Assembly (NCBI GenBank): GCA_002269645.1
Contig: NIVC01000538.1
Coordinates: 483,497 to 547,496 of the forward strand
Length of the DNA stretch: 64,000 bases
Direction of reading: 5' to 3'
Source: Macrostomum lignano
Taxonomy: Eukaryota
The notes beneath the pieces are model-generated. The model did not search any database, had not been told where the DNA came from, and was given only the letters and a program-made list of their open reading frames with translations. A program made the translations under genes and the position numbers. The first letter of the stretch is position 1, and each line of letters begins with the position of its first letter. Positions 3,292-55,153 of the stretch are shown piece after piece.

Positions 3292-3521
3292 TGCCGCAAT
3301 ATTCAACGTTCGAGTGCTAAGCGATCGTACACACAAAGTATTTGGGAATCGTCTTTATAGGGTGGCAGAAATGTTAAAGCTGATTTTTCGTTTCAAAGCC
3401 GCGGTGTCCAGTCGTACGATTAGGTCTATGGCCAAAACTGATTCATTTGAATAGCGGGGTTTGGGTTGGAGCAGCGGGTTCCATTTTCTGGCCAGATTCA
3501 GAAAGTCGATTTGTTAATCGA

Positions 3522-5780: not shown

Positions 5781-6968
5781 AGAGCTGGGATCACAATGGG
5801 GATCTGGGATAAGAATTGAGGATATGGGATCAGAATGGGGATCTGGGATAAGAATTGAGGATATGGGATCAGAATGGGGATCTGGGATAAGAATCGAGGA
5901 TATGGGATCAGAATGGGGATCTGGGATAAGAATCGAGGATATGGGATCAGAATTGGGGATCTGGGATAAGAATTGAGGATATGGGATCAGAATGGGGATC
6001 TGGGTTCTGGGATAAGAATTGAGGATATGGGATCAGAATTGGGGATCTGGGATAAGAATTGAGGATATGGGATCAGAATGGGGATCTGGGTTCTGGGATA
6101 AGAATTGAGGATATGGGATCAGAATTGGGATCTGGGATAAGAATCGAGGATATGGGATCAGAATGGGGATCTGGGATAAGAATCGAGGATATGGGATCAG
6201 AATTGGGGATCTGGGATAAGAATTGAGGATATGGGATCAGAATGGGGATCTGGGATCAGAATTGAGAATATGGGATCAGAATGGGGATCTGGGTTCTGGG
6301 ATAAGAATTGAGGATATGGGATCAGAATTGGGGATCTGGGATAAGAATTGAGGATATGGGATCAGAATGGGGATCTGGGTTCTGGGATAAGAATTGAGGA
6401 TATGGGATCAGAATTGGGGATCTGGGATAAGAATTGAGGATATGGGATCAGAATTGGGGATCTGGGATAAGAATTGAGGATATGGGATCAGAATGGGGAT
6501 CTGGGATAAGAATCGAGGATATGGGATCAGAATGGGGATCTGGGATCAGAATTGAGAATATGGGATCAGAATGGGGATCTGGGATAAGAATTGAGGATAT
6601 GGGATCAGAATTAGGGATCTGGGATAAGAATTGAGGATATGGGATCAGAATTGGGGATCTGGGATAAGAATTGAGGATGTGGGATCATAATTGGGGATCT
6701 GGGATAAGAATTGAGGATGTGGGATCATAATTGGGGATCTGGGATCAGAAATGAGAATCTGGAATCAGAATTGGAGATCTGGGATCAGAACTGAGAATAT
6801 GGGATCAGAATTGGGGATCTGGAATCAGAATTGAGGATATGGGATCAGAATTGGGGATCTGGGATAATTAATTGAGGATATGGGACCATAATTGGGGATC
6901 TGGAATCAGAAATGAGAATCTGGGATCAGAAGTGGGGACCTGGGATCAGAGTTGGGGATCTGGGATCA
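5781..6968. repeat. 39-bp composite minisatellite (gggatcagaatggggatctgggataagaattgaggatat)
   Basis: Tandem periodicity built from ~19-20-bp subunits with a GGGATC core. Confidence 0.95.
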
Positions 6969-11319: not shown

Positions 11320-14065
11320 CCCGGGTAGCATTTTGACGTCAATTTGCGGTTGCGTTGACGTCGCAAAAATTACTTTCGCAAATCTATTCAGCCCAGCCCG
11401 TCTTCGTTGATATTTTAGTTTATTTTTGCATAATTAGATGCCAGAGTCAATATGCATTTATAGTCATCATTTTGCTAGCTCAATTATACCTGTAAAATAG
11501 CAACGAAGTAACGTAAAATATTCGTTGAAAGTAGGTTGAAAAATCAACGTCAAACTTTAGTCATTATGGAACCCAAAATTTGACGTTTCTATGCTGCATT
11601 ACTATATGATAACGTAGATTGAATGATTTTATAACGCTGAAAAAAGTAAGGGAAAAAGTAAGGCTTCGTTTTTTTACAGTTTTATTTTGTTAATACGTGT
11701 TATTAAAATCGTATATTTGAATATTTTGCTGCATGATAAATCGCTTTATATTTAATATAGATCATAAGTGGCGTTGCTTTTTTATTTAGTTAGTGTTACC
11801 AGCTATATGAAACTTCACCTTCACGATGATATCAAACGTCATCTTTCTCCTGGTTGAATATTATTCGAAATATTTTCAGCTGCCATAAAACATACCAATA
11901 GATTTTTTTGGTATAGATATAGAATGACTTAAAGCAACACCAATTACCAAATCATGGCTGATTTAGCTACTAATACAAACTTTGCTAAATTGGCTGACTA
12001 ATAAGATAGTTGCTCATTTTAATTCTACTACTTTCTCTCTCCCCATTTCCTATCAGTACTGCTGTTTGTATTGGAAATATACAGTAATAATAGCCTGGCC
12101 TACCATAAGTATTGCATTGATTAGGCCTACAACTACTAGAGTTAAACATAATTCATATCAAAATAATAATTGTCTGGAAATCAAATTCCTACATACATAC
12201 AGTTTGCAAAGAACTGCTTGATTTTCGAATCAGTCTTACTCTCAGCCTAATCATATATAATCATTGGACCTTAGATATCATATCCAAGATCCAATTTCAA
12301 ATTTTTATTTGGAAGGTGCAGTTGTTCTAGCATTTCTATCATACAAAAAAGCTTGGTATACTTGATTTGAAATTAATAATTTTTGTTTCTTAGTTTTACT
12401 AATCAGCCATTTAATGACATTATATCTATTATACATTCTAAGTTCATGTTAGGCCTAGCATTTAAAATATACTTTAGTTTCCTAGTTAGCTCATTAAAAT
12501 CTTTAGTAGGCCCTAATTTCTCATTTTAGGGCCTACAATTTCCTTAACAAACTTATGCTTAGCTATATTCTATATTAAAACATATTTATTAATGTTTTGC
12601 CCTATCAAGTAGCCTATAGCTTTTTAATCATATTTAGACATGTTTTAGACATTATTGTAGCATTGCTAAGGCACTATTGTTTAATTTATGGTTGAGCAGA
12701 TTTTTTAGTTGAATAGAAAGTCTGAACAAAAGTAAAAATCTTTATAAGATTATGTACAGAAATCCTAAGAGTCTAAGACTAAGAGTAAGGCTAAAGACTT
12801 CTGTATAATATAGTTTTGTATATTGCAATTTATGGATGTATAAAATATAACTGTACAAATGCATAAGTCAAAATCTTTTTATAACCGAATATACTTTTTT
12901 CTGCCTATTTCAGATGGCCACCTGGATGAAGAGGACAGGAGAGATTGCTACTATATGCCATCAATGATACTAATTTCAATTCGCAACTCCTAGATGAGGA
13001 GGAGAAAATTCATTCCTATGATGACATCATCCCTGCTTATTGGAACAGGTTGTCATGAAGGAACGTCAGCTAGTCAATTTGAGGAAGGAGTTGAGGAAGA
13101 GGATAACAATTCACCATTTGATTCAGTCTCCTCCAATTCAGAGACTGAGGACTATCAAGAATTTGATGTAGATCTTCTGAGTGAAAGACTGGGCAATATG
13201 CAGCAATATGCAACCACTCTCTATTTATTTATTTTACAGTTCTGTTGTTTGCTGCTTTCATCCTTATATTTGTTTCAATGACACTGTTTTCAACATTCTA
13301 TTCTGTTTTGTCAGTACTGTCGTTTTTGGCGCTATTGTAAATTTTTCAACTTTTAAAATTTAATTTATTACCATCTTTTTCATAAATTTTCATCTGCAAG
13401 CATCAACTTAATTTGTGTTAAAATAACAATTTACGAAAAAAGTAACAATAACTTCTAAATCCAATGTCTACGATGTATGTATACAAGAGAAGATGAATAT
13501 AAGGCTTTGTCCGCATGTATTCTTGTTTAATATTTTCTGGTGAAAATGTAACTTATTAGCCAGGGGCGTAGCCAAGGGGGTCATATTGGGGTCATGAACC
13601 CCCCCCCCCAGCCGGCTGATCCAAGCCAAATACAGGCAGCAGCCCCCCTCCCCCGTCGCAGAGGCCTAGCACCCCGCCCCCGGTTGCCGCTGTGACTGTG
13701 ACCCCCGGAAGGAAATTCCTAGCTACGCCACTGCTATTAGCTTCTAAAAATAAGATGTGTACAGTACTGCCTACACACATTCAAAGAAAGTTGACTTCAG
13801 AATACAAAGATAACCATCAGTCATAAAGCCGGTAACATTTGTTTTCTTAAAAGACATCATACCAGTCATTTCGTGCATTTAAAAGCCATTAAATCTATTA
13901 AAAAAAGACGGTAAAATTTCGGTACATTTTGACGTCAAAACAACGTCACAGATCCAGGTCAAAATGACGTAAAAACATCGACAGAATTGACGTCATTTCG
14001 ACGTTACACTTTGACCTATTTTCAACGTCATTTTGACGTCGCGCAACGTCACTTTGCTACCCGGG
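11320..14065. mobile_element. Non-autonomous CMC/EnSpm-like DNA transposon (2.75 kb)
   Basis: 11-bp TIRs CCCGGGTAGCA / TGCTACCCGGG; TAT on both flanks; many subterminal (G/A)ACGT motifs at 11335-11362 and 13925-14050; degenerate acidic ORF remnants at ~12914-13250. Confidence 0.7.
13561..13733. mobile_element. hAT-like MITE (173 bp)
   Basis: Termini CAGGGGCGTAGC / GCTACGCCACTG; 8-bp flanks TTATTAGC / CTATTAGC (7/8 match); GC-rich island in AT-rich context. Confidence 0.75.
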
Positions 14066-14216
14066 TATACTGCTGTTTTTCTTGGAATTCCGAACCGATT
14101 CTGGTTCTGAAATTGGAAATATGAAAAGACCCAATAAGCCACTGAAGAAACTCCAAATCTTCGAAAACACTAATATATCAAATCAATGGACATGAGAATT
14201 AAAAAGTTCTGAAGTT

Positions 14217-15099
14217 ACTACGTAACGTGCAGTTAAGTGTTGATTTTTAGGCAGATTTGACGCAAAAAACGCAAACTATACTACTATCTGAAAATGAAGT
14301 AAGTAGTATATGAAAACGCTATCCTAAGCGTGATATGCGTATATGTAGTCGTATATGTACATTAATCCATGTACTGCAATAATCCCTATCTATCTCAAAT
14401 TGTACATTGTTACACGTCTATCCCCAATTCTATATGTACGCAGTACATACTTCTACATGTACATTAATCTACATCTACATGTACAGTGTCATACATTAAT
14501 CCCAAGACGGCCCGCGCTCTGCGTATGAATCACCAAGATTACATGTACAACTTGAAACCCTACTACATGTACAGTTGTACAATCTCATCTACTACTGCCA
14601 AATGAGTCAACTAATTGAGTAGCTCACATCGTAATGTATATTTCCAATGTACATTCTCAGAGACAGATTTGAATAATACTGGTCGGAGTCTATATGTACA
14701 TCGACAGCCTCTATACTCATATCTGCTACATACCCAAAAATTAGGTATGTACATTTTCACCCTCGGAGAATGTAGGTTTGAATATGCTGATAATTTATTC
14801 GAAATCACTTATAAAATACACATACTTTCATATAGAGGCGGGCCTGTACAAAACTCTCGCCAAGCGATGGGGTGGAGGTTGCGTCATCCAAGCCTCTCCC
14901 CAAGTCAGACCCCAAATGCAGGACTGTGTTGAAGCAGTGCTTTATATTTCTATTGACAGTGGGTATGATACAAGACGCTTCGTCGCGCTTTAATTACAGT
15001 AAACCATCCCCTCGAAGCTCCTATACTGAATGCTGAATCACCCTTTAACTCGAACCATAGTCAAATTCAACCCTGTTCGAAAACAGCCACCCCTCCGAT
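14217..15099 (+). repeat. Left terminal inverted repeat (883 bp) of the large element
   Basis: Reverse complement of the right arm, with only a handful of substitutions and two 1-bp indels seen. Confidence 0.92.
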
Positions 15100-15717
15100 G
15101 TTCACCAGACTCGTCTTCACAGCGCAGACCCCATAGCAAATCGAGCTAAATTTTAACACTCGCCCCTGTTCTCTCTGTCCCCCTTCTAAATGCCAAGGAA
15201 TTTCGACCCTCTCTCCATTTTCAGTGTACAGACAGATCTTTCCACAGCACAGACCCTATATTAAACTTCATTCAGCAAAACCCCTCTCTTCTCCGATTAC
15301 GTCATCCATGCCACCCCAGATAGCAAGAAACCAACTTTTAATGCACACATCAACCCCGCGAATCTGAGCAAATCCGAGTCCGCCAACCTCTACCTGCATT
15401 GACAAACCCCAGCTGCATTTGTAAATGTACACAGCCTATGAATCAGTGTCTCCACCGCATGCAATTCTGATTTACTTGATTCTAAACTTTGTAAATATTG
15501 CAATAGTATAAGTCACCCTTGCGTTTACTAGAAGTAGTGAAGTCCACAAATTTAAATACGTGAGGCTATTCAATTCTATCGCCTCCCCTGCCTTCTCACT
15601 TCAAGCTTTCAGACATGGTCTTTGAGACGGTTTAATCTGTTAGAAGCAGGAATGAATAATGCACTGACCTCTCCATACAAAGTAAAGTTGGAATTTCAAA
15701 CAAGAAATTTGGTTATT

Positions 15718-16147
15718 TTGAAAGCTAAATGACTAGAAATGCACATTTTTTCATAAGAAAATACAATTTTTCACAGTTTTTATACATTTTTTACGTTAAA
15801 ATGCAGAGTTTATTGATCAAAATCAGTAGTTTCATCACTAGAAACCATACTTTCAACAGCTAATTTGTCCAAATGTCGCTTTCAACTTGACCTTAGACAG
15901 CGTTTAAGCAGGAATGAACCCCACACGAACATCCACAAGCCAGCCCAAAATCATCCAAAGACATGGCTATTGAAGCCTAAATTGCTAGAAATGCGCATTT
16001 TTTCATAAGAAAATACAAATTTTCACAGTTTTTATGCATTTTTACGTTAAAATGCAGACTTTATTGATCAAAATCAGTAGTTTCATCACTAGAAACCATA
16101 CTTTCAACAGCTAATTTGTCCAAATGTCGCTTTCAACTTGACCTTAG
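15718..16147. repeat. Direct duplication of a ~180-bp AT-rich unit (15718-15896 and 15970-16147)
   Basis: Two near-identical copies, both ending caacttgaccttag. Confidence 0.85.
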
Positions 16148-16284
16148 ATGGTACCGATTGTCCTGTTGTCGGCTGACTCGTCCGAGTTGCGCCTGTGTGT
16201 ATTATAAGAGAAACAAAAATTCATATTTATGCATCATCATTATCATCATCATCGTTATCATCATCATCATCACATCACCATCAG

Positions 16285-16324
<40 letters not shown>

Positions 16325-19300
16325 TTCTTCTTCTTCTTCTTCTTCCCTTTTGTCGCCGTGTGTGGCATGGGCAGTCTTCGGGGTCTCTCGTCAGCAGTCC
16401 TTGCAGGTGCGTAGGTGGCGTGCCATGTTCGTCGCGGCGAGCGTGCGCCCACAACCTTCGCATTGTTTAGTTTTCGCTCGGTACTTCCTCTCACCTCCCG
16501 GGGACCGTGTCTCTTCCCGCGTTGTACCGCAGGTTTTGCGGTGTCTCGCTAGGTTTGATTTCGATATTTCTCGAGCACAGTTCGCGCATTTTACGCGGTT
16601 TCCTCCCACTTCTCTCTCTCCTCCGCAGACCTTTACGTGGTTTAACCACGTTGCCTCTTGCCTGAACTGCTTCTCGCATTTTTCGCACTTGAACGTTACT
16701 GGTTCTTCTATCTTGCGGTGCATCCTCTTTTGGTGAATGGTCAGGCCTGCTTTGCTTTTGCACTCCTTTCCGCAGTCTGCGTATTCACATATGAATGTTC
16801 TTGTTTTCTCCTGTTTCTGTTTGTCGTTCCTTTCGATGTTCCTTGCTTCTGCCTTCTTTCCTTGTTGTTGTTCCCATCTCTTGAGGTGGCTTATGCGTTC
16901 TTGAACAATTTTACGCCATTTCTGGCGGTCGGTTGCTAGTCTCTCTGTCCTTTCGGGCTCGATCCCTGCTTGGCGTAGTAGTCGCTTCCAATATTCGATG
17001 GTGTTACCTTTTCTCTTACGTGTTTTGCTATCTTTTCCAGACCCTTGTACCATCCGAGAACCATCTTTTTCGTTAGGCGGTTCGCCTCCATGCGAAGCAC
17101 ATGTCCGATGCGGATCAGGTGGCTCTTCTCAATCTTTGTTTGTATTGTCGTTACTTCTAGTTCATTGCGGATGTCCTGCATATTTATTCCTTTTGCCTCC
17201 ATTTCCCTTAGTGGTTCCATTTTCCTGCTGCTCCATATCTGCCGGTAGATCCGGTCCATGAAGCTTTGTAGTTGCTTCGTTTCTGACTTCAGGAATGGGC
17301 GTATGTTCGCGTGGAATAGCAGGATGCTCTCTATACAGGCTTCAACGACCTTCGCTTGGGTGGTCTTTTTCAACCTGCACTTGATGAAACGTCTACGGAT
17401 CGTCGACCAGCTTCTCGCCGCTTTTTGCAATCTCTGGCTCGTGTCATACTTCGTGTCCGTCCATGATCCTAGCATGCGTACTTTTCCTCCCTCTCTGGTT
17501 CCGAATATCATTTCCTCTTGCTTTTTGTCGTTCGTTTGTTCTTCGAATCCTGTCATTATTTCTTTCGTCGACTCTAGGCCCGCGCTGAGTTCCTTGCGGT
17601 TGCCTAGGATAGTGGTGTCGTCTGCGAATAGAACTGTTCTGATGAGTTCGGTTTTGGTCTCCGAGTTTGGTTGGTTTCTTCGCTGAGGTGGGAGTGAGCT
17701 TCCTGGGAGGTATGTCCATTCGATTCCGCATATTTGCTCTTTCTCCTTTGCTGTTTGTGCTCTTTTCTCCTCAACTTCCCTGATGCATGCTTGGTGAAAG
17801 ATATTAAATAGAACTGGGGATGTCGGGCATCCTTCGCGTAGTCCTCTTTCTGGCAACCACGATTCACTGGACTGTTTCTTTCCTTTCACTTTGTACTCTG
17901 TGTATTCATGAAGGTCCTTCAATTTGTCAATCACTTTTTCCGGCAGGGCGTACTTCTGTAGTATCCCCCAAAGTATCGGCTTGCTGACTCTGGGGTATGC
18001 TTTCCGGAGGTCTAGGAGAAATGCTAGTTGGTCTTCTTCTAGGTTGCAGTCTCCTACGGCGTTTTTCGCCTGGCGGTATTCTGTTATGTCCTCTTGTATA
18101 CGGATGATTATCTGGGTGCTGTCTGCCGTTGATCGGTTGGCTCTAAAGCCATTCTGATTGTCGTCAAGCGCCCCGACTCGTTCTGCCCAGTCCCGTAACC
18201 TTGAGGCGATGATTCTTGCCAATATGCGACTTAGCATCGGCAGGAGGCACACTCCTCGGTAATTGTTAAGGTCGGTCCTGTCCCCTTTCTTAAAGAGTGG
18301 TATGATAAGGCCTACCTTCTCACTGGCTTCCCAGTGCCACGCTCGGTGTTCGTATAGATATCGGATTCTTTCCCGGACAGCTTCTCTAACTTCTTCGGGC
18401 CCTTCCTTAAGGTAGCGCAGGCGTATTTCGTCCTCTCCCGGGCTTTTGTCCTTCATTTCTTTGATTGCTCTTTCGATCTCCGCGTCACTCGGTGTGTCGC
18501 TGAGTTCTCTGTATTCTTCCTTGCTAATGGTTTTACTTCCCGCTGGGGTTTTGATGTTTCTAATGAGCTCTGCGATCTTCTCCGGTTCGTTCTCCATTCT
18601 TGTTTTCTGTATGTTTTCTAGGTGTTCCTTGAATTCCTGTTCGTCGATATTCGTGCCTCTTTCACTATTGTTGAAGGCCGTGCCTCTTTTGTCTAGGAGT
18701 CGGAGTTTGTCGTATACCACCGCTATTTGTCCTTTGTCTGCTGCGTTTCTACATTCGTCGGCCAGTTGATCCCACCACTGTTCTTCCCATTCACGCACCG
18801 TGTTTTTTGGGTTTTTCGTGTTTTTCTCAGCGCCTCTTCTGCTCTCTTCGTCTGCTCGCTTCTCGGGCCGTGGGTTTCCCTGGCCCTGTTCCTCTGTTGG
18901 AGTCTTACAGCCAATTCTTCGTGCAACCTCTTTAGGTCGTTTTCGTGGGATGACATCCACGGATTTGTTTGTCGGTTCGCTGGTCCGCAAATCGACTTTG
19001 CACTCTCCACGATTATTCTTTGCACTTCTGTCCATGGTGGTTGTTCTCTTTCCTCCTTGTTCTCCTTCCACGTTTGCATTCTTCTTTCCAACTCTTTTTT
19101 TAATTTCGTTGCGTTCTCTTCATCATAGAGCTTCTTCCAGTTGATGCCTTGATTACTTCTCCTGTACAGTCTTTTTGCGTTCGGTCTTTTTCCTGTGTCG
19201 GCTACGCTCCTGATTATTAATGTCTTTGGGATGTGGTCGGACAGTGCACAGCCGTTGTGATTTTTAATTGATTTTATGATTTTATTACGGTCCTCTGCTC

Positions 19301-20399
19301 TTGTCGCGAATCCATCAATTTCGTACCATCTTCTGTTACTTGGGTTCTGCCATGTCCCTCGTCGTTTTTGGTGGTAGAACGAGTTTACCCATGCGAGGTC
19401 GTTGGATGTCAACCAGTTCACTAGGTCTTCTCCCTGCTTATTTGTTGTCTCCAAGCCAAATTTCCCTCTGTTTGGTGTTGGTCTTTCTGAGTTTTTGCCA
19501 ATCTGAGCATTGAAATCTCCTCCTATAATCAGTGGTCTTGGTGTCTTATCCGCATGGATGTACCGTTCTATCTCATGTCGGAGTGCAGCCAGCTCTGTTT
19601 CGTATTGTTGACTGCCCCTGACCGGACTATAGATGCTGATGATTGATAACTTGTAGATTTCAAGCATAACCGCTCTCTCGCACCTCGTTACCTTTGCTCC
19701 GCTGTCTCTCCAGATGGTGTACCATTCCCGCTTTCCTGCTGTGAATCAGGTGGACATTCTTTCCTTTTTGGTGGTAGCTTCTTACTCCATCGTCTGGTGC
19801 TCTGAGTTCTGAGATTAGAGTGATTTGCCAGTTCTCTGTCATTATTTTCTTCGTTATTTCTCCGAAGCGTCTGTCCAGGATGTTAGCTCTCTGCACGTTC
19901 CATGTTGTGATTCGAGTCTCCTCTTCCAGTCTCTTCTGTCTGCGGTTCTTCTCGTTTTGCTTCCTTCTTGTCCTTCTTTCTTTCCGTCTTTCATTTCTCC
20001 TCTTCTTCCATTCACTTGTCTTTTTTTGGTTTGCGCTCGTTTTTATTCGTTTTTGTTTGTTTTTTAGGTGCTTCCTGTGCTCTCGGTCCCGGATTCTTTT
20101 CAATAGTTCTTAGTCTTATTCTTATTATTTCTGCAAGGTGTCTCTTCTTCTTCTTGATGTTGGTCCTGCTTGTTCTCTTTCTCTTCTCATCCCCGTCTCG
20201 ACTGTGGTTGGCCTGGTGTTGTGCGGCAGCTAGGTCGGCCATGGCTACCTGCCGTTGCTGAAAAGGGCCGGTTGCACAGTTCCGACTTGCGTCGTGGGCT
20301 GGGCTCCGTGCCGGATTCCCTCTGCGTCTTCTTTGCCAGAATGCGTGACCACATCCTGTCCGCTTGCCACCTCGGGAAGGTGAGACACAATCGGCAAAC

Positions 20400-20433
<34 letters not shown>

Positions 20434-22435
20434 GTCATCATCGTGTGCATAAGACACAATCATAGCTTATAGCTCATAGTTTATATAATCAATCAAACAA
20501 ACAAACAAACAAACAGATACTTACGTAGACAGCGTCGATTCGATGTATTAGAAACGCCGACACCGTCTTTCGATGGTATAGATTGTTGGGCGCTTTCTTT
20601 ACTCCGCTGGCTATTCCATGTAATAGTCTGGCCGCGGTAGTGACGTCGTCTGTTGCGCCAATAAATACACCATTGGGTGGTTCCGATAACCGGAGTGCCC
20701 TAATTACAGTGATGGCACCGAAATCAGACTCATTTTCCAATAGAGTCTTGACTGCGGCTAGGATGCACTGCAATTGGCATGCCTTTACTCCGGCGGTACT
20801 TGCTTGCCAGACACCGCGGGTTTTCATCTCTGTCAAATCTGTGCCAACTTGGTGCGGAGCATTTAACCAAGTCTCCAGACTGACTCCCAGCTTATGTATT
20901 AATTTGGCAAGTGTTCCTCGAACCGCAGTGGTCAGTTGTTTCCGACGATGAACATGCGACTTGTTTTCTTCAATCTTGTTATTGATTTTCCACCAAATAT
21001 CGACAAGTCGCTTAGTCATGTCCTCGGCGATAGACTGTGCTTCACCATAGTCGACCATGGCAAGTGGATCATCAGTCTCGCTCGCACTGCTGTCGGAACC
21101 ACCCGCATTGTCATCCGCTTCGTCCTGGATGTCGGTGTCGGAACCAGCCGCATCAGCGGCTTGGTCGCTGTCAGGTGGCGCTGGTACGACAATGACTCTG
21201 CCTTGCTCGGAATCTGCATTGTCATTGTCCTTAGCACATTGATCGATCGCCTCCAATAAGCTGGCAACAATTTCGTCATCTGTTGTCGCGACGTTACCAA
21301 CCGCGATCTCTTCTCCTACTTCGTGGTGCCGTTGTACCGCGCTGGCCAATCTACCGACATCCGGACGCTTGTTGAACTGACCGATGCTCGTCTCGAGACC
21401 ACGGATCAGCTGTCTGGACGCCAATTCGACGTGACCACGGAGTACACGCGTCACATCGACGATGTCCATGTCGCTGGTCTCCATGTCTGGACGCAGCTGT
21501 TCTGCAAGCATGTCAAGCTGACAAGCTGTTTTCTGCAGATCAGTCAGATAGCCTGTTGGTTGTTTAATCGTGAAATAATACCCATTTTTACTCTATAATT
21601 AGTACACATCAATAAGTATACAATAATATTGTGCGATACTATCTACTGATAGAGAAGAACTGAACGATTAAATATTATTACCTTGAAATTGGCGCGCCTT
21701 TCGTATTATCGCATCGGTGATGCTGTTGCCGACTGAATCACTGTTAGACGATTGATGAACACGGTCGTCGCCAGATGGTCTCTGTTCGAATCGATCCGGT
21801 CCAACTTGGGTGCCATCGTCTGTGATGTACAACTCTTCGACAGATTCGACGACACACGGTCTAACATGATCAGGCGCGGTATTGGTCGACCCGGTTGCGA
21901 ACTTAGCTGCTGATTGGCGTTCGGTGTTCGATGCCGGGGTCACCGTTTGAGCGCGGCGTTCACTGTTGACTGTCTTGGTCGCAGTTTGAAAATTGGAATC
22001 CCTGATTGGTCCAACGTCTACACCGTCGAGTAAACCACTTGTAGACGGACCAGCTGATAAACTGACAACCGGTAGTTCAACAGTCTGTTGAGCAATCACA
22101 TCTGTTGGGCGTGCGTTTGTTGCGTCAGGCTTTCGCTTGCATGATCGTTTTAGATGTCTTTCGATACATCGAACGACCCGATGGCAATGTGGACACATTG
22201 TCATGCCGTATGTGTCACCATCGCGCTGCAGCCTTACCGCCTTCCAAACAGCAATCGCCCTAACAAATATTGGCAACTCGGAAGATGGACGATTCCCTTC
22301 TTCCACTGTAGCCAAGTAGAAATTGCGGACGAATTCTATATGACGTCTTACTAGATGACGCGCCATACTCCGCTGACTAAACAACTGTGCGCAAACAGGA
22401 CACGCCGCGTTGTCGTTACGGTGATTGTCGGCCAT
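16133..22435 (-). CDS. Spliced zinc-finger protein gene carried by the long-TIR element; exons 22435-21682, 21552(or 21525)-20525, 16192-16133; ~610 aa, probably 3'-truncated
   Basis: CPVC..SMARHLVRRH and CPHC..ERHLKRSC motifs. Donor caag|gtaat (phase 1) and acceptor caacag| are in matching phase; donor tac|gtaagt; acceptor cacacag|gcg. The 255-aa and 340-aa ORFs join in frame. Function not recognised. Confidence 0.65.
16231..16345. repeat. (CAT)n then (CTT)n microsatellite: LINE 3' tail plus target tract
   Basis: Seen directly. Confidence 0.9.
16324..20399 (-). mobile_element. Near full-length RTE-like non-LTR retrotransposon (APE + RT + C-terminal zinc fingers), frameshifted
   Basis: APE motifs TWNVQ, GGDFNAQIG, EIDGF, SDH; RT motifs NYRGVCLL, QNGFR, LDLRKAY, GLREGCPTSPVLF, LFADD; (GAA)n tail. 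The ORF is split over frames 20242-20012, 20103-19660, 19667-18723, 19071-16936 and 17053-16391. Confidence 0.9.
20399..20442. repeat. (CAT)n microsatellite at the LINE 5' junction
   Basis: Seen directly. Confidence 0.9.
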
Positions 22436-22690
22436 TATGTAGACTAGTATAATAATATAATATAAATTTCTAAATTTCTAGGCTTATAGCAATTAGGCTA
22501 TGAACAAAGAATATGCAAAAAAGGAAGAAATAATTCCGTATAAGGTTTGTCAATTTAAAATAACAGTCAAAACGTGAGATACAAATTCTTATATCTATGG
22601 CAAATAGGTCTAGCTGAGACCGATTTTGTACAGGCCTTAGTGTCTGATCCATGGCGGAAAGAATAGAATGGAGTGCTAATCTGAGCCAGT

Positions 22691-22915
22691 TATTTTTATC
22701 TCGCTCAATCTTAACTTTTAACATACCTTCCCCCCCGTTCTTTCCTATCGACTCGTGACTGCCATAGACAAAGTATTTTCCGTCTCGTTTTCGTTCCCCT
22801 CTGAAATTTCTATCCCAGCATAGTATGAGCTCGCATCAAAATATGCTTTCAGCCAATAGGAAGGAACGGAGGCGAAAGGGATGTTAAAAGCGAAAATCAA
22901 GCGAGATAAAAAATA
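22691..22915. mobile_element. Foldback/MITE-like palindromic element (~225 bp, ~57-bp imperfect arms)
   Basis: 22691-22748 pairs imperfectly with 22856-22915. Confidence 0.5.
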
Positions 22916-23189
22916 TCTTACCAGTGTTTAACCAATGTTAAAGCATACGAAGTCAAATCGCCAGTGTGTTAAATTATATAGGTCAAAACGCCAGTATTAA
23001 AGCATACGAGGTCAAAACCCCACCACTAAAGCATCGGGGGTTGAAAACATCACTGCTGAAACATTAGTGTTCAAAACAACAGTGTTGTTAAAGTATCTGG
23101 GGTCAAAACATCAATGTGTTAAAACATAGGAGTAAATCAACCAAGTACACCAATCAATTGCGTCAGCCATGTACAATAGCCAAGTGTGC

Positions 23190-23368
23190 TGACCAAATGC
23201 GCCAGCCAAATGCGCCGACCAAATGCGCCGACCAAATGCACCGATTTCTCATTGGCTTGTCTAATATATAGACCAAATGCGCCGACCAAATGCACCGATT
23301 TCTCATTGGCTTGTCTAATATATAGACCAAATGCGCCGACCAAATGCGCCGACCAAATGCGCCGACCC
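23190..23368. repeat. 13-bp (gaccaaatgcgcc) repeats with a 54-bp unit x2, abutting the inner end of the right TIR
   Basis: Visible periodicity. Confidence 0.85.
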
Positions 23369-23381
23369 GATCGGAGGGGTG

Positions 23382-26300
23382 TGTTATGTTCTCTTCTTCT
23401 GCTTCTATACCGACTATTGCCTCCAGGCTACCATCTGACATCAAAGTCAAGTCGAAGAAGCATTATTTAAAATACGAGCTGTTCACAAGCTTTATTTGCC
23501 TCTAGCCGGCGCACGTTTTGTTTGCCCTTTGTAATACTGTTAGCCTTCGGCTCTTAAAGAAATAAAAGATTGTACCCTAGACTATAGACAAAAGAAGAGA
23601 AGCATTAGTGCATTTGCTAAACCAAAAGTCCATACACAACATTCCCCCCTTTGTCAATTAACATCTCAACCGGTCCGGTTTCTGCAATTTGTCTCTGTCC
23701 CTCAGTCGTCTAGGTTCTTTAGCCGATGTGTCAGTGCTCTTGCCACGAGTTCCGTCTGAGTCGGTTGTCTGTGGTTCGTCTTGCACGGGCACGCTTTGGG
23801 CTGCTGGATTTGAGATGTCCTCACTCTGCATTTGCTCACGAGCCAAGTCAGTCTGATCGTCCTGATGCCTCTTCATGATTGGTGGAATTCGGGTGGGAAG
23901 AACGTCTGTCTTGACAATTTGATCAACGTGCCTCTTCCAGATTTGACCGTTGACCTGCAGTCTGTAAGACATTGGTCCTGTGCGGGTGACCACCTCGGCA
24001 GGAATCCATCTGTTCTCTTTCTCCCTTCTGAAATCCAGCGTCAGAACTTTTTCCCCCTCCTGGAACTCCCTCGGCGACGCTCCTCTATGGCTTTGTCGTT
24101 CGGTCACATCAGTCTGCTTATCCAGTACTTTTGAGTAGGTGTCCGGCCTAAGAAAGTTCAATTGAGTCCGGCGCTTGTAGCACAGCATCATTTCAGCTGG
24201 CGTCCTACCAGTTGTAGAGTGAGGTGTACTTCTGTATCTGAACAAGAAGTTCTGCATACTCAGTATTGGGTCTCCATGCGTTTTGATTCCGGCTTTAATA
24301 GCAGACTTCGCAGTCTGGACCATCCTTTCGCTAAGTCCATTAGTACGCGGATGTCCAACAGCCGTTTAAATTTGACGAATATTATTTCGCTTCAAAAACG
24401 CACGAAACTCAGATGAGCAGAACTGACTGCCGTTGTCACTTAAGACTTGCTGGGGAATTCCGAACCTTGTGAAAGTATCTCGCAGGCACTCAATTGTCTT
24501 ACTTGTAGTCGCATGTTTCATAGGAAAAATCTCGACCCATTTGCTAGTTGCGTCGACAATGATAAGCCAGAAATATCCATGAAATGGTCCCATGTAGTCC
24601 AGCTGGATTCTTGTCCATGGCTTCTCTGGCCAAACAAGAGGTTGTACAGGTGCCTGTGCAGGTAAATTTCTTTGCAACTGGCAACCTTCACAGCTTCGGA
24701 CTAGGTCTTCGATGGCACTATCGATTCCAGGGAACCAAACATGCAGCCTAGCGATAGACTTCATAGCAACTATTCCAGGGTGTCCGTCGTGAAGCAACTC
24801 CAGAACCATTCGTTGCACACTCCTTGGAATAACGACGCGCAGTCCCCAGAAAATCACTCCTTGCTCGATACAAAGCTCATTTCTTTTACGAAAATACTGT
24901 TCCAAACCTGGCTCACTTGTTTCTGGCCAGCCGTTTTGGCAGTAGTGAACGACTTTTCGAAGTTCTGCGTCCTTCCGTGTCGCGGTTCTAATCGTCTCTG
25001 CTGTGATCGGTAGCATCTCAAGTCTGACTTCCAGAATTTTGTCACATGAGATGTTCTTGGCTCGATCTGGTAAGCGTGAAAGCGCGTCCGCATTTGAATG
25101 GTCCTCTGTCCTTCGAAATTTGATTGTGTATTGGTGGGCGGACAGAAGTACGGCCCAACGCTGAAGACGACTTGCTGCGATGCTAGGGATATCCTTTTTG
25201 TCTCCAAAGATGGTTAGGAGCGGCTTATGGTCCGTCACAAGCACGAAATGATGTCCAAACAGGTACTGGTGGAACCTTTTTACTCCGAGTACTATGGCCA
25301 GCGCTTCCTTCTCCAACTGCGAGTAGTTAATCTCCGGCTTTGATAGCGTCCTCGAAGCATAGGCAACTGGCCTTTCATCACCATTCGGCATCACGTGCGA
25401 GATGACACATCCGATTCCATACTTTGAAGCATCCGTTTGTAGAACGAGCTGCTTCTTCGGATCGAAATGCGCTAGCACTCGGTCAGATGTCAGCGTTTTC
25501 TTCACCCTGTCAAATGCAGCGTTGCACTCCTCACTCCAGCGAAACTCCGATTCCTTGCACAACAGTCGATTGAGCGGTACCAGAATCGACGACAGATTCG
25601 GGATGAACTTCGCGTAGTAGGTTATCATTCCAATTAGAGAGCGAACTTCGGTTGCATTTGTTGGTGCCTGTGCATTGTGAATTGCCTCAACTTTCTCGTT
25701 TGATGGGTGAAGTCCATTTTCGTCAATAACGTATCCGAGGAATGAAATCTTGTTGAGACGAAATTCACACTTCTTTCTGTTTAAATGCACGCCATAATCT
25801 GAAAGGCGCTCCAACACGGCGTTCAACCTATTATCGTGGTCTTCCAGACTGGTTCCAGACACCAGAATATCATCTATGTATACAACGACGTCCAGGCCCT
25901 GCAGTATTTTCTCCATGGCCTCCTGAATCTGAGCCGGTGCGGATGCCAGTCCCATTGTGAGTCGGTTATATTGAAACAGACCGAGATGAGTGTTGATAGT
26001 GGTAAACCTTCTACAGGATTCTTCCAACTCAAGCTGCAGGAATGCTTGCGAGATGTCCAGTTTGGTAAAATATTTCCCGCCATTTAATGTTGCAAAAATT
26101 TCTTCTAGTCGTGGCAGAGGATACTTGTCGACCTCTAATTGTGGATTGACTGTCCTTTTAAAGTCAGCGCAAATTCTCACTGATTTTCCATCGCGCTTGA
26201 GAACAGGAACGATTGGCGATGCGAAATCCGATGCCTTCACCTTCGTGATGATTCCTTGGGCTTGCAAACTCTTGAGCTCGTCCTCAATGAGACCTTTGAT

Positions 26301-27976
26301 TGCAAATGGAACTGGCCGACTTTTGAAATACTTTGGTATTAAATTCTCCTTCAGCACTATATTGGCCTTCAATCCTTTAATGGTTCCCAATGTCTCAGCA
26401 AACACTTGCTCATGCTTCCTTACCAATAGATCCATAGGCTGGACTAATGTGGTCACGTTCACACTCGCAAACTTGTCCCAGTCAATCTTGATCTTAGAAA
26501 GCCAGTCGCGTCCAAGCAGATTTACTCGTTCTCCTTTGACAATCAGTACAGGCAATTGGTAAAGCCTGACGTTGTGGCTAACCACGTCGATTGTTGCTTC
26601 ACCTAATACTGGGATTGAGTGATCCGTGTAGATGGACAACCTTAAGGTAGTCCTTGAAAGCTTCAGGCCTAGTTGCTTGCTGGTCTTCTCGTTGATTAGG
26701 GTTTTATCCGCACCAGTATCCACTTGAAATCTTACAGCTTTTCCGTTCAGTTCCAGTTCGCACTCGTATGGTGGAGAAGTGACATGCGCGACCTGTCCAG
26801 TCGAGCACACTGTCCTGACTTCAAAGCACTCCCTGTGGTGTCCCTGACTCGTACAGTTTGAGTCCCTGCTGTGTGAGCTGGTTGAACTAGCTTTGTCCTG
26901 TGCATAGTGCACTCTGCCGTGTCTCTTATGTCTGGACAAGCTGAGTTTCTTTTGCTTTCCACCTCCGGAATCTTTAGTCCTGTCCCTTGTGCGGCAGGCA
27001 TCACTTTTATGTCCCACTCGACCGCACTTGCTGCACTTCTTGCTACGGTAGGGGCAGTTCTTTGCCCAGTGATCTTGTGCATTGCAGCGGAAGCATCCAG
27101 ATTGATTGTTTCTGTTGTTCTTCTCTGACAAGCCGTCTGTCAGATTTTTACTGGCTCTCGAAGACTTCACCGCCTGGATTGCACCGGTTGACGAAATTGT
27201 CACCACACCTCTTTCCGCTGCTTCCATCGCAGTCGCAAGGGTAAGTGCTCCAGTTAGTGTCAGTGTGTCTTCTTGCAACAGACGCTGCTGTGTCAGGCGA
27301 TTCCTTAGGCCGACAACGAACCTGTCTCTCAGTGCCTCGTCCAAGAATTCATTAAAACCACACGTGGCAGCCAACTTCCGCAGACTTGCGATGAAATCGC
27401 TCACATTTTCTCCTTCATGTTGGGCTCTGCTGTGGAAGTTGAATCTCTCGACAACGATCTTAGGCCTTGGGTTAAAATGCTCCCTCGGGGCCTTGACTTG
27501 ATCGTCGAAGTTCACATCCTTGGGCTTCTTTGGTGACAGCAGGTTGCGGAGCAATTGATAGCAGTCATTACCAATCACTGTAATCAGATTTGCTCGCTTA
27601 TGTGCCTCCTCGGTCACTTTGTTTACGACGAGAAACTGCTCGAGTCGTTCTTCATAAGCTTCCCATTGCTCCGGTTTAGCCACGTCGAACTCTCCGATTT
27701 TTACACTCGTCGCCATTGTTATGTTCTCTTCTTCTGCTTCTATACCGACTATTGCCTCCAGGCTACCATCTGACATCAAAGTCAAGTCGAAGAAGCATTA
27801 TTTAAAATACGAGCTGTTCACAAGCTTTATTTGCCTCTAGCCGGCGCACGTTTTGTTTGCCCTTTGTAATACTGTTAGCCTTCGGCTCTTAAAGAAATAA
27901 AAGATTGTACCCTAGACTATAGACAAAAGAAGAGAAGCATTAGTGCATTTGCTAAACCAAAAGTCCATACACAACA
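23382..27976 (-). mobile_element. Full-length Ty3/Gypsy LTR retrotransposon (Mag-like, 4595 bp)
   Basis: Identical 260-bp TG..CA LTRs (23382-23641, 27717-27976); 5-bp TSD GGGTG; PBS TGGCGACGAG; PPT at 23642-23652; gag-pol with two CCHC knuckles, protease DTGA, RT YIDD, RNase H and integrase. Confidence 0.97.
23658..27716 (-). pseudogene. Gypsy gag-pol single ORF with one in-frame TAA at 24366-24368 in the integrase core
   Basis: ..RNNIRQI-TAA-TAVGHPRTNGLSERMVQT.. continues in the same frame to 23658. Confidence 0.88.
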
Positions 27977-28727
27977 GGGTGGCTGTTTTCGAACAGGGTT
28001 GAATTTGACAATGGTTCGAGTTAAAGGGTGATTCAGCATTCAGTATAGGAGCTTCGAGGGGATGGTTTACTGTAATTAAAGCGCGACGAAGCGTCTTGTA
28101 TCATACCCACCGTCAATAGAAATATAAAGCACTGCTTCAACACAGTCCTGCATTTGGGGTCTGACTTGGGGAGAGGCTTGGATGACGCAACCTCCACCCC
28201 ATCGCTTGGCGAGAGTTTGTACAGGCCCGCCTCTATATGAAAGTATGTGTATTTTATAAGTGATTTCGAATAAATTATCAGCATATTCAAACCTACATTC
28301 TCCGAGGGTGAAAATGTACATACCTAATTTTTGGGTATGTAGCAGATATGAGTATAGAGGCTGTCGATGTACATATAGACTCCGACCAGTATTATTCAAA
28401 TCTGTCTCTGAGAATGTACATTGGAAATATACATTACGATGTGAGCTACTCAATTAGTTGACTCATTTGGCAGTAGTAGATGAGATTGTACAACTGTACA
28501 TGTAGTAGGGTTTCAAGTTGTACATGTAATCTTGGTGATTCATACGCAGAGCGCGGGCCGTCTTGGGATTAATGTATGACACTGTACATGTAGATGTAGA
28601 TTAATGTACATGTAGAAGTATGTACTGCGTACATATAGAATTGGGGATAGACATGTACAATGTACAATTTGAGATAGATAGGGATTATTGCAGTACATGG
28701 ATTAATGTACATATACGACTACATATA

Positions 28728-29001
28728 TGTAAAGGCTCAATTAATTGCGAATGGAAAAAAAGCTTAGGCTTCCACTTAGCCTTGCGTGCTATTATATATT
28801 GTGGTTGATCGATATGCAATACGATGTACATAATGCTAGAAGGGCCAAAGCTCAAGCCGATTGGCTGCAGAGGAGAGAAGAACTGAATGGGGTGGGGGTT
28901 TAAATATTGCAAGGGCCGAAGGGTTAAGTTGGCTGGCGGGAGAGAGAGTACATTGAACAGCGGGGCTGACAAGAGCGCGCAGCGCACGGGGACGGCTCAC
29001 A
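28728..29001. mobile_element. Solo LTR (274 bp) inserted in the right TIR
   Basis: TGT...ACA ends; 5-bp TSD ATATA (28723-27, 29002-06); absent from the left TIR, which shows the empty site. Confidence 0.82.
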
Positions 29002-29268
29002 ATATACACATATCACGCTTAGGATAGCGTTTTCATATACTACTTACTTCATTTTCAGATAGTAGTATAATTTGCGTTTTTTGCGTCAAATCTGCCTAAA
29101 AATCAACACTTAACTGCACGTTACGTAGTGAAGTTTTTGAATAGGTTCATTAGTGCGATGCGGCCCTTTACACGGGCCTGACTTACCACGCCACCAAATT
29201 GTGACCCGTTATGGAAATCAAGAATTTTGCCTTAGGCCGACAATACATAGGACCTGTGGCGATCAAAT

Positions 29269-29460
29269 GAGTGCCTGCGGCGCCTAAATGAGTGCCTGCA
29301 GCGCCAAACTGAGTGCCTGCGACGCTAAAGTGAGTGCCTGCGACGCTAAAGTGAGTGCCTGCAGCGCCAAAATGAGTGCCTGCAGCGCTAAACTGAGTGC
29401 CTGCGGCGCCAAAATGAGTGCCTGCAGCGCCAAAATAAATGTTTGCGGCGCTAAAATGAG
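29269..29460. repeat. 21-bp minisatellite (gagtgcctgcagcgccaaaat)
   Basis: About 9 tandem units. Confidence 0.9.
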
Positions 29461-31494
29461 CGGGGGAGCGGCGGAATGATGGGGGAGTCGCAATCCGGGG
29501 ATCAAGAAACGACGGTCAGGCCAGGGAGAGAGCAAGTTCTTGGCCGGTCTCCAGAAAGGATTAGTCCGAGCGGGCCAAAAACACCGGTTTAAATAGCCGC
29601 CAACTGGACCGCAGTTTGTTATAATGGAACACGTCGATTCTGATTGTCTGAGCCGATTTGTTAAAATGAGCGTCGAATTCTCTGATTGGCTGAGCTTGTT
29701 GCCCCCCAAAGTCACGTGACCGGGAGATCCTATATCAGTTCCCTCGGGGTCGTAAAAATATGACAGGTGCGGCCATAAATCAATCAAAATCGCAACAAAA
29801 TGATTTATGACTTTTCGCGTAGAATTGACAAAAATTATTGAAAAAATATACATCAGAAAGCTCTTATTAAGTAGAAAGTGAAGGTAATGAAGAGAAATTG
29901 CTAATCGCTAATCCCAACGTATGTACTTTTAGGGGTAAAACGCATAGCTGTCAAAGCTGTCACACGCTTGAGTGAACACGAACAATAGGCCCTGACCTCA
30001 TAAATCTGATGGCCTGCCAAAATGATGAGAAAAAAGCTATCATTCGCATCCTCTCAGACCATCTGGCGCCAGCCCCAGCACTGAGTGAGGCGCAGGTGGC
30101 TGTCAGACCAGCTCAGACGCAATGATTTATGACCCAAAAGCGAAAAACCGCGCCTATGTTATTTTAACTACCAGTATGGCAGATTAATATAGCTACAGAA
30201 GTCCTACTAATATGAATTCTAGAAAAATTACAAAAGAGGAAGAAAAACGCCCATAGCCTGCTGTTAGTAGGCTAGCAAGTTTGGAACCCATGTGCGAGCG
30301 TGAAATTTGGAAAAAAAAGTGCGTCCTCATCAGGATGTACATGTAGAATTTTTGGCTTTGTCCCCCACCATAAATCCATGGCGACGCCCGCAGCCACCAC
30401 GAGGAACCAGATTAAAAGCATGCGCAAAAAGAGATCAAGTCACTTCGTTCCATCGATCAAAACTTCGGTAAAAAACTCCATAGAAGACAATTATTTCGAA
30501 TTAACAGCTAAACAATATCTGTGCATGTAAATTTATACTCTTAGTTACGAGTATCTGCATGCAGGATCGTAAACATTCAAGCAACTTCGATATCTTCGTG
30601 TCAATTTGAAATAAAGGTACACGCAGCGCACTTGAAAGACAGAAATTACTCGAAAATGCATTGAATACAAGCATTCATTTTCTCATACAAATTTAATTTA
30701 ACTTCAGCCAGATTACACATGCAGGTATACATAGAGCTCCTGTGGTAAAATCTGATTGGTCGGTCAGTCAGGCGGAGCTGCAGGGTGTAAAACTATACGC
30801 ATGAAAGCTGTATAAATCGAAACACGAAATATACTACTGAGTTTTATTCCTTTTCTTTGCCGCACGTTTTCAACCTGAATTTACACACGGAGAGACTGAA
30901 CGCTAAGGACGCCAGGACGAACAATGTGCCGCTGGGGCTGCGCAATCTTTGATTCGGTGAGAATAATTCTGTTGCAGTTTCTGTTGGCTTTAATTGCTAA
31001 TTTCTGCCTTTAGTACGAAGCTATACATCGAAAGCAGAAATATATAGACACTGAGACCAGTGACATCGGAAAAGTTGTGCTGTTTTACTCACTCGCTTGC
31101 CCGTAACTTCCCTCAGTGACAAGCAAGTCAGCAAGTACAGCAGTATATCCGCTTGATTGTGCTTTTGTGTGCCAAGGGAAATTGCTTGCATAGCTAGTGC
31201 AGCATTACATGTGCCTACAATATAGGTGCGCGCATGTACACAGTTCCTCACTTAATCTCGTGTTTGCCTCTAGTCAACAGGTGAATTAAGCCTGAACGCA
31301 TAGGCGAGTCCTAGTTAGCAGGAATACGGATGCACAGAGAGAAACTTAGCGGCGGCTAAAATGCTAAAGTTCTCATATTAAAAGTCGGGGGACAATGACA
31401 AACTGCATGGCATTGCAATCCGACCGATAATTGCGCCCTGAACCTGGGATTCGTGTGCCTCACACCCAGACAGTCAGTTGTATGCACAGATACC

Positions 31495-31750: not shown

Positions 31751-32396
31751 TCCTGTGTAATCTCGCGAAACAAATGCTACAATGGACTTTGTTTTAGTAT
31801 AGCAAAGCTGTTGGACTGCATGGTAAGCATACAACCAATTGGCACAGCAAATGCAATGAAATCATACAAAATGTTGGATTTGCCACGCAAACAGTGAAAC
31901 AACGCAATTTAAAAAAACCCATCTGAGGTTTTGGCTATGAAAATGAAAGCGTTTCTTTGCTTCATCAACTATGTGAAGCTGCGGGCCCAATCTGTCAGCC
32001 AGCTGACAAAACACTGCCTGGGGCCGGGTACCCCAAACCAGAGACCGCTTCGCAGATGCAGCTGCGCTTGAGAGCTCATTAATTATTCATGAGCCTTTTT
32101 TATAGCAATGGAAATATTTTTAAGCCTTCACAGAATCCCGTTTGGAAAAAAATTGGGAGCCGGTGGGGCAGACGTCGTCTGATGATTGAATCTTTTTACA
32201 GCAATAGAAGTTTTTCTAAATTCCTGCTTGATAGTTATATGCTGCAACTAGATAAGATTTGAATAGAGTAACTATATTGTACTCGATAATTACCAAATTA
32301 GGGAAGCTTAATTTTTAAAAGATTGTCCTATATCTTGAAATTTTTAAGGCTGGATTCCAAAATGCAATTTTAATTGCAGATAATTGGGGACACTCG

Positions 32397-35300: not shown

Positions 35301-36090
35301 GAGGTTGCCAAAAGCGATTCTGAGGTTGCTAAAAGGGGCGATTCTGAGGTTGCCAAAAGCGATTCTGAGGTTGCCAAGGGGCGATTGTGAGGTTGCTAAA
35401 AGGAGCGATTTTGAGGTTGCTAAAAGGAGCGATTCTGAGGTTGCCAAGGGGCGATTCTGAGGTTGCTAAAAGGGGCGATTCTGAGGTTGCCAAGGGGCGA
35501 TTCTGAGGTTGCCAAGGGGCGATTCTGAGGTTGCCAATGGGCGATTCTGAGGTTGCTAAAAGGGGCGATTCTGAGGTAGCCAAGGGGCGATTCTGAGGTT
35601 GCTAAAAGGGGCGATTCTGAGGTAGCCAAGGGGCGATTCTGAGGTAGCCAAGGGGCGATTCTGAGGTTGCTAAAAGGGGCGATTCTGAGGTTGCTAAAAG
35701 GAGCGATTCTGAGGTTGCCAAGGGGCGATTCTGAGGTAGCCAAGGGGCGATTCTGAGGTTGCTAAAAGGGGCGATTCTGAGGTTGCCAAGGGGCGATTCT
35801 GAGGTAGCCAAGGGGCGATTCTGAGGTTGCTAAAAGGGGCGATTCTGAGGTTGCCAAGGGGCGATTCTGAGGTAGCCAAGGGGCGATTCTGAGGTTGCTA
35901 AAAGGGGCGATTCTGAGGTTGCCAAGGGGCGATTCTGAGGTAGCCAAGGGGCGATTCTGAGGTTGCTAAAAGGGGCGATTCTGAGGTTGCCAAGGGGCGA
36001 TTCTGAGGTAGCCAAGGGGCGATTCTGAGGTTGCTAAAAGGGGCGATTCTGAGGTTGCCAAGGGCGATTCTGAGGTTGCCAAGGGGCAAT
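32397..36090. repeat. 3.7-kb satellite of 21-25-bp units (ggggcgattctgaggttgc[taaaa/caa])
   Basis: Visible periodicity with internal higher-order duplications. Confidence 0.97.
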
Positions 36091-37571: not shown

Positions 37572-37757
37572 CACGCTGAACTCCGCCCAGTCCTCGCTCA
37601 CGTCATGCTGAACTCCGCCCAGTCCTCGCTCACGTCACTCTGAACTCCGCCCAGTCCTCGCTCACGTCACTCTGAACTCCGTCCAGTCCTCGCTCACGTC
37701 ACGCTGAACTCCGCCCAGTCCTCGCTCACGTCACGCTGTACTTCGCCCAGTCCTCGC
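37572..37757. repeat. 32-bp tandem repeat derived from the last codons and stop of the lectin gene
   Basis: Unit gctgaactccgcccagtcctcgctcacgtcac, ~5-6 copies, contiguous with the CDS end. Confidence 0.88.
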
Positions 37758-42640: not shown

Positions 42641-42758
42641 AAAACCAGTGTTAGTGATGAGCGTAACGCATTGAGCCAATCAGAGTTAGCTCAGCTATCA
42701 GTCGGCACACTGAAACCAATTGATACTTTCATAACAGAGAACACAGAAGGGAATTGCA

Positions 42759-46711: not shown

Positions 46712-46802
<91 letters not shown>

Positions 46803-47614: not shown

Positions 47615-55153
<7,539 letters not shown>

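Follow-up and report, generated by a model that had tools for sequence, protein, structure and literature searches.

A DNA transposon with long inverted arms, nested insertions and a truncated zinc-finger gene in Macrostomum lignano

The DNA analysed here, called the window below, is a stretch of 64,000 nucleotides from Macrostomum lignano (contig NIVC01000538.1, positions 483,497 to 547,496 of the forward strand), in which positions are counted from the first letter. Window positions 14217-29129 are occupied by a 14,913-bp element that has two 883-bp inverted arms at its limits. The interior contains a truncated, spliced zinc-finger gene, and younger mobile elements interrupt both this interior and the right arm (Table 1). 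Sharp-ended, paired terminal inverted repeats (TIRs) and a target-site duplication (TSD) of fixed length at both flanks, the generic features of a class II (DNA) transposon, are present. The region is one class II insertion, plainly that of a TIR DNA transposon.

A repeat search of positions 13000-30500 revealed four collinear inverted-repeat segments by which 14217-15099 pairs with sequence between 27977 and 29129, and local BLASTN seconded this result. Arm positions 1-128 pair with 29129-29002 at 98.4% identity (126/128), and arm positions 124-876 pair with 28727-27977 at 99.3% (748/753, with 3 mismatches and 2 gap columns). The final 12 arm bases are found at 23370-23381 (12/12), beyond a nested long terminal repeat (LTR) element. 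Compared piecewise, with nothing joined, the arms are ~99.2% alike; over their 883 bp there are 5 mismatches and 2 gap columns. Their tips read ACTACG... and ...CGTAGT. The inverted homology ends exactly there, and the next outward bases are unpaired (T versus C). A perfect direct repeat, GAAGTT, flanks the element on both sides, such that the left junction reads ...TTCTGAAGTT/ACTACGTAACGTGCAG... and the right junction reads ...CTGCACGTTACGTAGT/GAAGTTTTTGAA..., where the slash marks the element boundary. The chance of 6/6 identity at two fixed positions is 1/4096, and the arms and duplication taken together lie well outside what chance would give. The 21-nt terminus has no site in the window besides the two ends, even with 3 mismatches allowed.

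Each arm contains 11 copies of the palindrome TGTACA, often in the form (C)ATGTACA(T). The expectation from 2,000 dinucleotide shuffles is 0.59 +/- 0.76 copies per arm, none of the 2,000 shuffles reaches 11, and the frequency in the remaining window is about 0.64 per kb. These palindromes are the likeliest candidates for the predicted protein-binding sites in the arms. The element's own sequence comes to ~5.8 kb, which comprises the two arms and ~4.06 kb between them. Within this interior, the right subterminal region includes tandem repeats with 29-bp units (22938-23034) and with 13-bp and 54-bp units (23180-23367), and a ~252-bp tandem duplication (15718-15897 / 15970-16148, 91-99% identity) lies toward the left arm.

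The interior has two minus-strand open reading frames (ORFs), at 21668-22435 and 20489-21511, that are parts of the zinc-finger gene. A splice model guided by A0A1I8G604 (P0007), a 1,084-aa M. lignano cluster member of the same protein family, recovers three retained exons. Their 593 codons contain no stop, and the translation is collinear with residues 103-678 of A0A1I8G604 and 85.9% identical to them. For exon 3, two M. lignano entries use different acceptors, and because both alternative acceptors are present in the window, this exon is independently validated. The second copy of the ~252-bp duplication repeats the end of this last retained exon plus its splice donor. The retained protein consists of two N-terminal zinc fingers of C2H2/C2HC type, an acidic low-complexity linker and, probably, a long helical region. 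The gene is broken twice, by a non-LTR retrotransposon (long interspersed nuclear element, LINE) that sits in its second intron, and by the deletion of the part encoding the last 406 residues. No counterpart of residues 679-1084 of A0A1I8G604 is found anywhere in the window by tblastn. Because these residues are not encoded in the window, the copy appears to have lost them, with anything beyond, through an internal deletion, and it cannot be autonomous.

Relatives of the gene product were found in one species only. With the joined ORFs of the window gene as the query, HMMER was run exhaustively against 1.84 billion representative proteins and found two real relatives, P0001 (93% identity) and P0002 (86%). 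Both extend past the end of the window's second ORF, and a cluster look-up identifies both as M. lignano UniProt entries. At least 7 UniProt entries belong to the family, with 93-100% pairwise identity. No credible relative outside M. lignano occurs among the 1.84 billion representative proteins. Protein-guided scans of metagenome contigs and of 2.9 million viral contigs revealed no relative of the family protein, and full-length A0A1I8G604 has no match in phage or plasmid translations. Exact look-ups of the two window ORFs and of P0001 and P0002 likewise identified no contig that encodes them. Judged by these searches, the family appears to be an orphan that is seen solely in M. lignano. Word-indexed protein searches that used the window protein or all of A0A1I8G604 as the query missed existing relatives that are 93-97% identical, probably because low-complexity acidic and serine/proline tracts filled the limit of 8,000 candidates. 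Negatives from such searches are unreliable for queries of this kind, and for the window protein the exhaustive search takes precedence.

Two candidate assignments of the protein were rejected. P0003, a 5,434-aa metagenome protein (E = 4e-9), is not a relative, as a tandem repeat of ~200 residues drives the match. The name "Ras-GEF domain" that UniProt gives to short M. lignano entries was treated as an automatic label; there is no Pfam RasGEF match and no match to a PDB exchange factor.

Three younger insertions are found inside the element, a LINE, an LTR retrotransposon, and a solo LTR, and each has its own hallmarks. The LINE matches the Pfam families Exo_endo_phos_2 (1.9e-10), RVT_1 (6.4e-19), and zf-C2H2 (7.5e-9). 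Because its coding region is split over four reading-frame segments, its ORF2 has at least two frameshifts. (CAT)n arrays occur at both of its limits (16232-16324 and 20400-20442), and its bounds are approximate because of these microsatellite tails. These arrays may mean that a microsatellite was already there when the LINE inserted, or that there is a second, truncated tail. The fingers at the C terminus of the LINE (16391-17053, minus strand), which match Pfam zf-C2H2 and zf-C2HC_2, and the N-terminal fingers of the gene (22150-22435, minus strand) share a common CxxC...(M/L)ARH...C/H pattern. One finger class may be shared by two mobile elements that are not related, or the likeness may be coincidence.

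The LTR retrotransposon is of the Ty3/Gypsy type and has Pfam matches to zf-CCHC, aspartyl protease, RVT_1, RNase H, Integrase_H2C2, and rve. A single in-frame stop is the only interruption of its 1,375-codon gag-pol frame. This nested element is only 4.6 kb long, has identical LTRs, and is very young. The solo LTR (274 bp) is not related to the 260-bp LTRs of this element.

These results bear out the anatomy proposed in an earlier note on this DNA, which had described 883-bp TIRs of ~99% identity with a right arm in three pieces, an exact 6-bp TSD of GAAGTT as a direct repeat at both flanks, and a nested LINE, Gypsy element and solo LTR whose removal leaves ~6 kb. The arm identity of 99.2%, the sharp ACTACG/CGTAGT ends, the flanks as read, the three insertions, and the ~5.8 kb of own sequence all agree with it. 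The same note had called the element recently mobile. An arm divergence of 0.8% is in keeping with this description, which is fair just in a loose, relative sense, because the element predates the LINE insertion, the young LTR element, and another LTR insertion, by now reduced through recombination to a solo LTR.

Table 1. Features of the transposon insertion and of the elements nested within it, in window coordinates
Feature	Position	Strand	Remarks
Target-site duplication, left copy	14211..14216	.	GAAGTT; read directly; same as 29130-29135
Left terminal inverted repeat	14217..15099	+	883 bp, unbroken; begins ACTACGTAACG; 11 TGTACA
Left internal non-coding remainder	15100..16142	-	Start of the intron after the last retained exon; six-frame Pfam search empty
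Truncated gene of the element	16143..22435	-	Three retained exons; 593 open codons; GT..AG introns
Exon 3	16192-16143	-	Splice model guided by A0A1I8G604
Non-LTR retrotransposon (LINE)	16232..20442, approximate	-	Apurinic/apyrimidinic (AP) endonuclease, reverse transcriptase, C-terminal C2H2/C2HC fingers
Exon 2	21501-20525	-	Splice model guided by A0A1I8G604
Exon 1	22435-21682	-	Splice model guided by A0A1I8G604
Right subterminal region, upstream of the gene	22436..23369	.	Tandem repeats; no Pfam match in any frame
Right terminal inverted repeat	23370..29129	-	Three pieces, 883 bp in total, separated by two nested elements; ends ...CGTTACGTAGT
Ty3/Gypsy-type LTR retrotransposon	23382..27976	-	4,595 bp; 260-bp LTRs 100% identical; 5-bp duplication CACCC
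Solo LTR	28728..29001	-	274 bp; TG..CA ends; 5-bp duplication TATAT
Target-site duplication, right copy	29130..29135	.	GAAGTT; read directly

By the features tested, the element fits no described superfamily. The reading that we favour, at a probability of about 0.45, is that the element is a non-autonomous copy of an unclassified family of long-TIR transposons, and that the zinc-finger gene is the family's own. The gene is read in this way because its true start codon is near one arm, because it fills the surviving interior, because it is an orphan confined to one genus, and because its truncation is typical of non-autonomous copies. Non-autonomous DNA transposons usually arise by internal deletion, and N-terminal C2H2/C2HC fingers are a frequent DNA-binding module of transposases. 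The earlier note had proposed a non-autonomous element with a spliced cargo gene. The lack of autonomy is upheld by the last 406 residues of the full-length relative, which are not encoded in the window, and splicing is upheld by the three exons with GT..AG introns, their collinearity with M. lignano proteins, and the documented alternative acceptor. The term "cargo" is doubtful, because an orphan zinc-finger gene cut by an internal deletion looks more like the family's own gene.

If this reading is correct, the inserting enzyme would have cut the two target strands at points 6 bp from each other, and repair of the stagger would have produced the GAAGTT duplication. The arms would be the cis-acting sites, with the 11 TGTACA palindromes in each as the likeliest positions for predicted protein binding. 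The 1,084-aa zinc-finger protein could be either this enzyme or its DNA-binding partner, whether the catalytic class is DDE-type or that of another recombinase. An internal deletion would have removed the rest of the interior from the present copy, which could then have moved only if a full-length relative provided the enzyme in trans.

Several points weigh against assigning the gene to the element. No catalytic domain is recognised in full-length A0A1I8G604, which has no significant match in Pfam, PHROGs, or NCBIfam, and no significant PDB match by phmmer or by profile. Its C-terminal 406 residues were searched with the word-indexed tool alone, which is below full HMMER sensitivity. Two AlphaFold models, with predicted local distance difference test (pLDDT) scores of 37 (single sequence) and 35.5 (an 8-row alignment of near-identical paralogues), are unusable. 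Also, A0A1I8G604 has 99 residues ahead of the start codon that are without a counterpart in the window, so perhaps that gene sits in a different context. A single copy of the element was analysed; the collections searched yielded no second copy, empty site, or autonomous partner, and neither the element nor its terminus has a match in the viral or metagenome contigs searched. Because M. lignano is a neopolyploid (PMC10733133), the seven database entries need not reflect a transposon-like copy number, and polyploidy could explain them.

A further step is less probable than the favoured reading itself. It is possible, although rather unlikely, that the element represents a superfamily of animal DNA transposons that has not been described before, characterised by TGTACA-rich long TIRs, AC..GT ends and 6-bp duplications. 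Such elements would be moved by a novel type of transposition enzyme, a zinc-finger protein of ~1,000 aa that has no detectable similarity to a known transposase, integrase, or recombinase, and they would so far be confined to Macrostomum.

Alternately, the arms might belong to a Pack-type or transduplicating element that is moved by an unrelated enzyme encoded elsewhere, in which case the three exons would come from a host zinc-finger gene, captured in part, and would be true cargo. The several introns of the gene, and its ordinary spliced M. lignano transcripts with alternative acceptors, are consistent with this explanation, as are the lack of a recognisable transposase domain in the protein and the absence from the element of the sequence that lies upstream of the start codon in A0A1I8G604. 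Polyploidy can also account for the number of database entries (PMC10733133). However, the fragment begins at the true start codon and takes up nearly the whole surviving interior, and its 593 codons remain open despite a protein divergence of 14%. Orphans of one genus are, moreover, more usual among element-encoded proteins than among host zinc-finger regulators. Gene capture is the alternative that survives best, and we consider it unlikely.

Polintons (Mavericks) have long TIRs of several hundred bp, and their ends are typically AG..CT. They also have a 6-bp TSD (PMC10045372), and they are defined by a protein-primed polymerase (pPolB) and an rve integrase (PMC5499653). The present combination of a 6-bp TSD and long TIRs is therefore classic Polinton anatomy, and the earlier note had named, as alternatives, a non-autonomous derivative and a new long-TIR family with atypical AC termini. 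Under a Polinton derivation, an rve integrase would act in trans, the arms would be replication origins of a protein-primed, virus-like parent, and a deletion could have taken away all of the core genes. However, the termini are AC..GT rather than AG..CT. With stops treated as X, all six frames of 14217-16231 contain no Pfam family at E <= 0.01, nor do the two interior ORFs or the other five frames of 20443-23369, and these frames hold no remnant of pPolB, rve integrase, capsid, ATPase, or protease genes. In this respect the earlier note was right, as it had reported an element without Polinton core genes. The sole rve domain within the element belongs to the nested LTR element, and the interior of ~4 kb has no room for jelly-roll capsid proteins, a packaging ATPase, and a maturation protease.

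The protein family itself gives the Polinton derivation no more support. Nothing in the 1,084-aa protein matches rve, pPolB, capsid, ATPase, or protease families, or any other Polinton protein family. The gene products that the earlier note had proposed to look for between the arms of longer copies (pPolB, rve integrase, major capsid protein (MCP), ATPase, or tyrosine recombinase) were sought in this protein, and none was found. The gene is intron-rich, and the 2.9 million viral contigs hold no relative. Duplications of 6 bp are not exclusive to Polintons, as they also occur in IS3EU/GingerRoot elements (PMC10045372) and, at 6-7 bp, in Dada elements (PMC3706591). A 6-bp duplication and long TIRs are insufficient to call an element Polinton-derived, and because only TIR length and TSD length are shared and 6-bp TSDs occur elsewhere too, the derivation is unsupported; a non-autonomous Polinton derivative is improbable. 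Thus, the transposon-type insertion, the lack of autonomy, and the spliced gene persist from the interpretation given in the earlier note, and the Polinton origin does not.

A Crypton- or Starship-like element is more doubtful still. In such an element, the full-length protein would include a divergent tyrosine recombinase at its C terminus, and the 6-bp repeat would be a crossover core shared with the target instead of a repaired stagger. Cryptons have flanking direct repeats of 4-6 bp that are taken as recombination substrates (PMC3212892), and Starships combine such direct repeats with TIRs (PMC13465315). By eye only, the last ~250 residues of A0A1I8G604 offer a lead, as an R...K...R...H...Y series occurs there in the order and spacing found in Cre, lambda Int, XerC/D, and Flp. 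However, Pfam gives no Phage_integrase, DUF3504, or DUF3435 match up to E 10, PHROGs and NCBIfam give no integrase match, and PDB gives no recombinase match by phmmer or by profile. Comparison by tblastn reveals no match to phage or plasmid integrases. A local profile was built from the public records of seven recombinases (lambda Int, Cre, P2 Int, FimB, FimE, XerC, and XerD). It gives no match in hmmsearch with --max and filters off, and hhalign aligns it with a probability of 0.9% and with the catalytic residues unaligned. The likeness to a tyrosine recombinase (catalytic R-K-H-R-H/W-Y) has failed every test, although the sensitivity of such tests is limited for a very divergent domain. Animal Cryptons are also without any terminal repeats (PMC3212892), in contrast to the 883-bp TIRs here.

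The weakest alternative is that no mobile element is present and that an inverted segmental duplication or assembly artefact has flanks that match by chance; it can appeal to the single copy seen and to a window extremely rich in tandem and inverted repeats, but it is highly improbable given 6/6 flank identity exactly where the 883-bp inverted homology stops, arms that differ at 7 columns, nested insertions with their own duplications in just one arm, and an interior that is unique and asymmetric. Because the arms are non-identical, the right arm alone is interrupted, and the interior has this character, an assembly palindrome is very unlikely as the source of the arms.

The whole window is packed, to an extraordinary density, with minisatellite arrays whose units measure 8-40 bp. 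Examples are located at 1015-2600, 3375-5000, 5700-6850, 29232-29502, 32375-35650, and 42613-43694, and further examples at 45053-45900, 50234-51121, 52142-53955, 55389-56469, and 57594-60000. Because these arrays are so dense, most of the long ORFs in the window are spurious. The arrays at 46636-47027 and 49120-50040 are mutually inverted, with about 85% identity over ~290 bp. Two ORFs outside the element are probable pieces of host genes. The ORF at 37726-38469 (minus strand) has a Pfam match to a C-type lectin domain (1.8e-6), and the ORF at 54182-54676 (plus strand), which is exon-like, matches the ZIP zinc transporter family (3.4e-14). Together with the dense minisatellites and with gene relatives seen solely in M. 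lignano, at 86-94% protein identity, these ORFs point to a Macrostomum genome or that of a very close relative.

If it is true that an orphan zinc-finger protein moves these arms, one superfamily would be added to the roughly twenty known kinds of eukaryotic DNA transposon, and the repeat-rich genome of the model organism M. lignano would gain a recently active element with a name. If the gene was instead captured from the host, or if the arms belong to a known superfamily, the region would be an ordinary nested-transposon locus. Its value would then be limited to repeat annotation and to dating, with three later insertions stacked on an older one.

Among known systems, the element resembles Polintons in its 6-bp TSD, in TIRs of several hundred bp, and in a total length near 15 kb, which is reached only through the nested insertions. 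It is unlike them in its AC..GT ends, in the lack of core genes in both the copy and the family protein, in its intron-rich gene, and in an own sequence of ~5.8 kb. IS3EU/GingerRoot elements are also TIR-bounded cut-and-paste elements of animals, and they usually have 6-bp TSDs. Their ends, however, are TA..TA or occasionally TG..CA, and their transposase is an IS3/rve-like DDE enzyme (PMC10045372). Here, the ends are AC..GT, and no rve-like match occurs in the non-nested sequence of the element or in the family protein. Dada elements likewise have TSDs of 6-7 bp, but are without TIRs and target U6, U1, or tRNA genes (PMC3706591), whereas 883-bp TIRs are present here. Searches with Rfam and ARAGORN identified no RNA gene in the window.

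Like Cryptons and Starships, the element has short border direct repeats, which are of 4-6 bp in those systems, and its gene adjoins one end; Starships can also have TIRs (PMC13465315). It differs from animal Cryptons, which have no terminal repeats (PMC3212892), in its 883-bp TIRs, and no recombinase domain has been demonstrated in its protein. Starships are fungal and far larger. Galileo (P superfamily) and Foldback-like elements have 7-9-bp duplications and transposases with THAP or other recognisable domains, and neither such duplications nor such domains are seen here. In such elements, arms of ~1 kb are full of short internal repeats, and most copies are internally deleted and mobilised in trans, as is proposed for the present copy. 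The long, repeat-packed arms are a further feature that the present element has in common with them.

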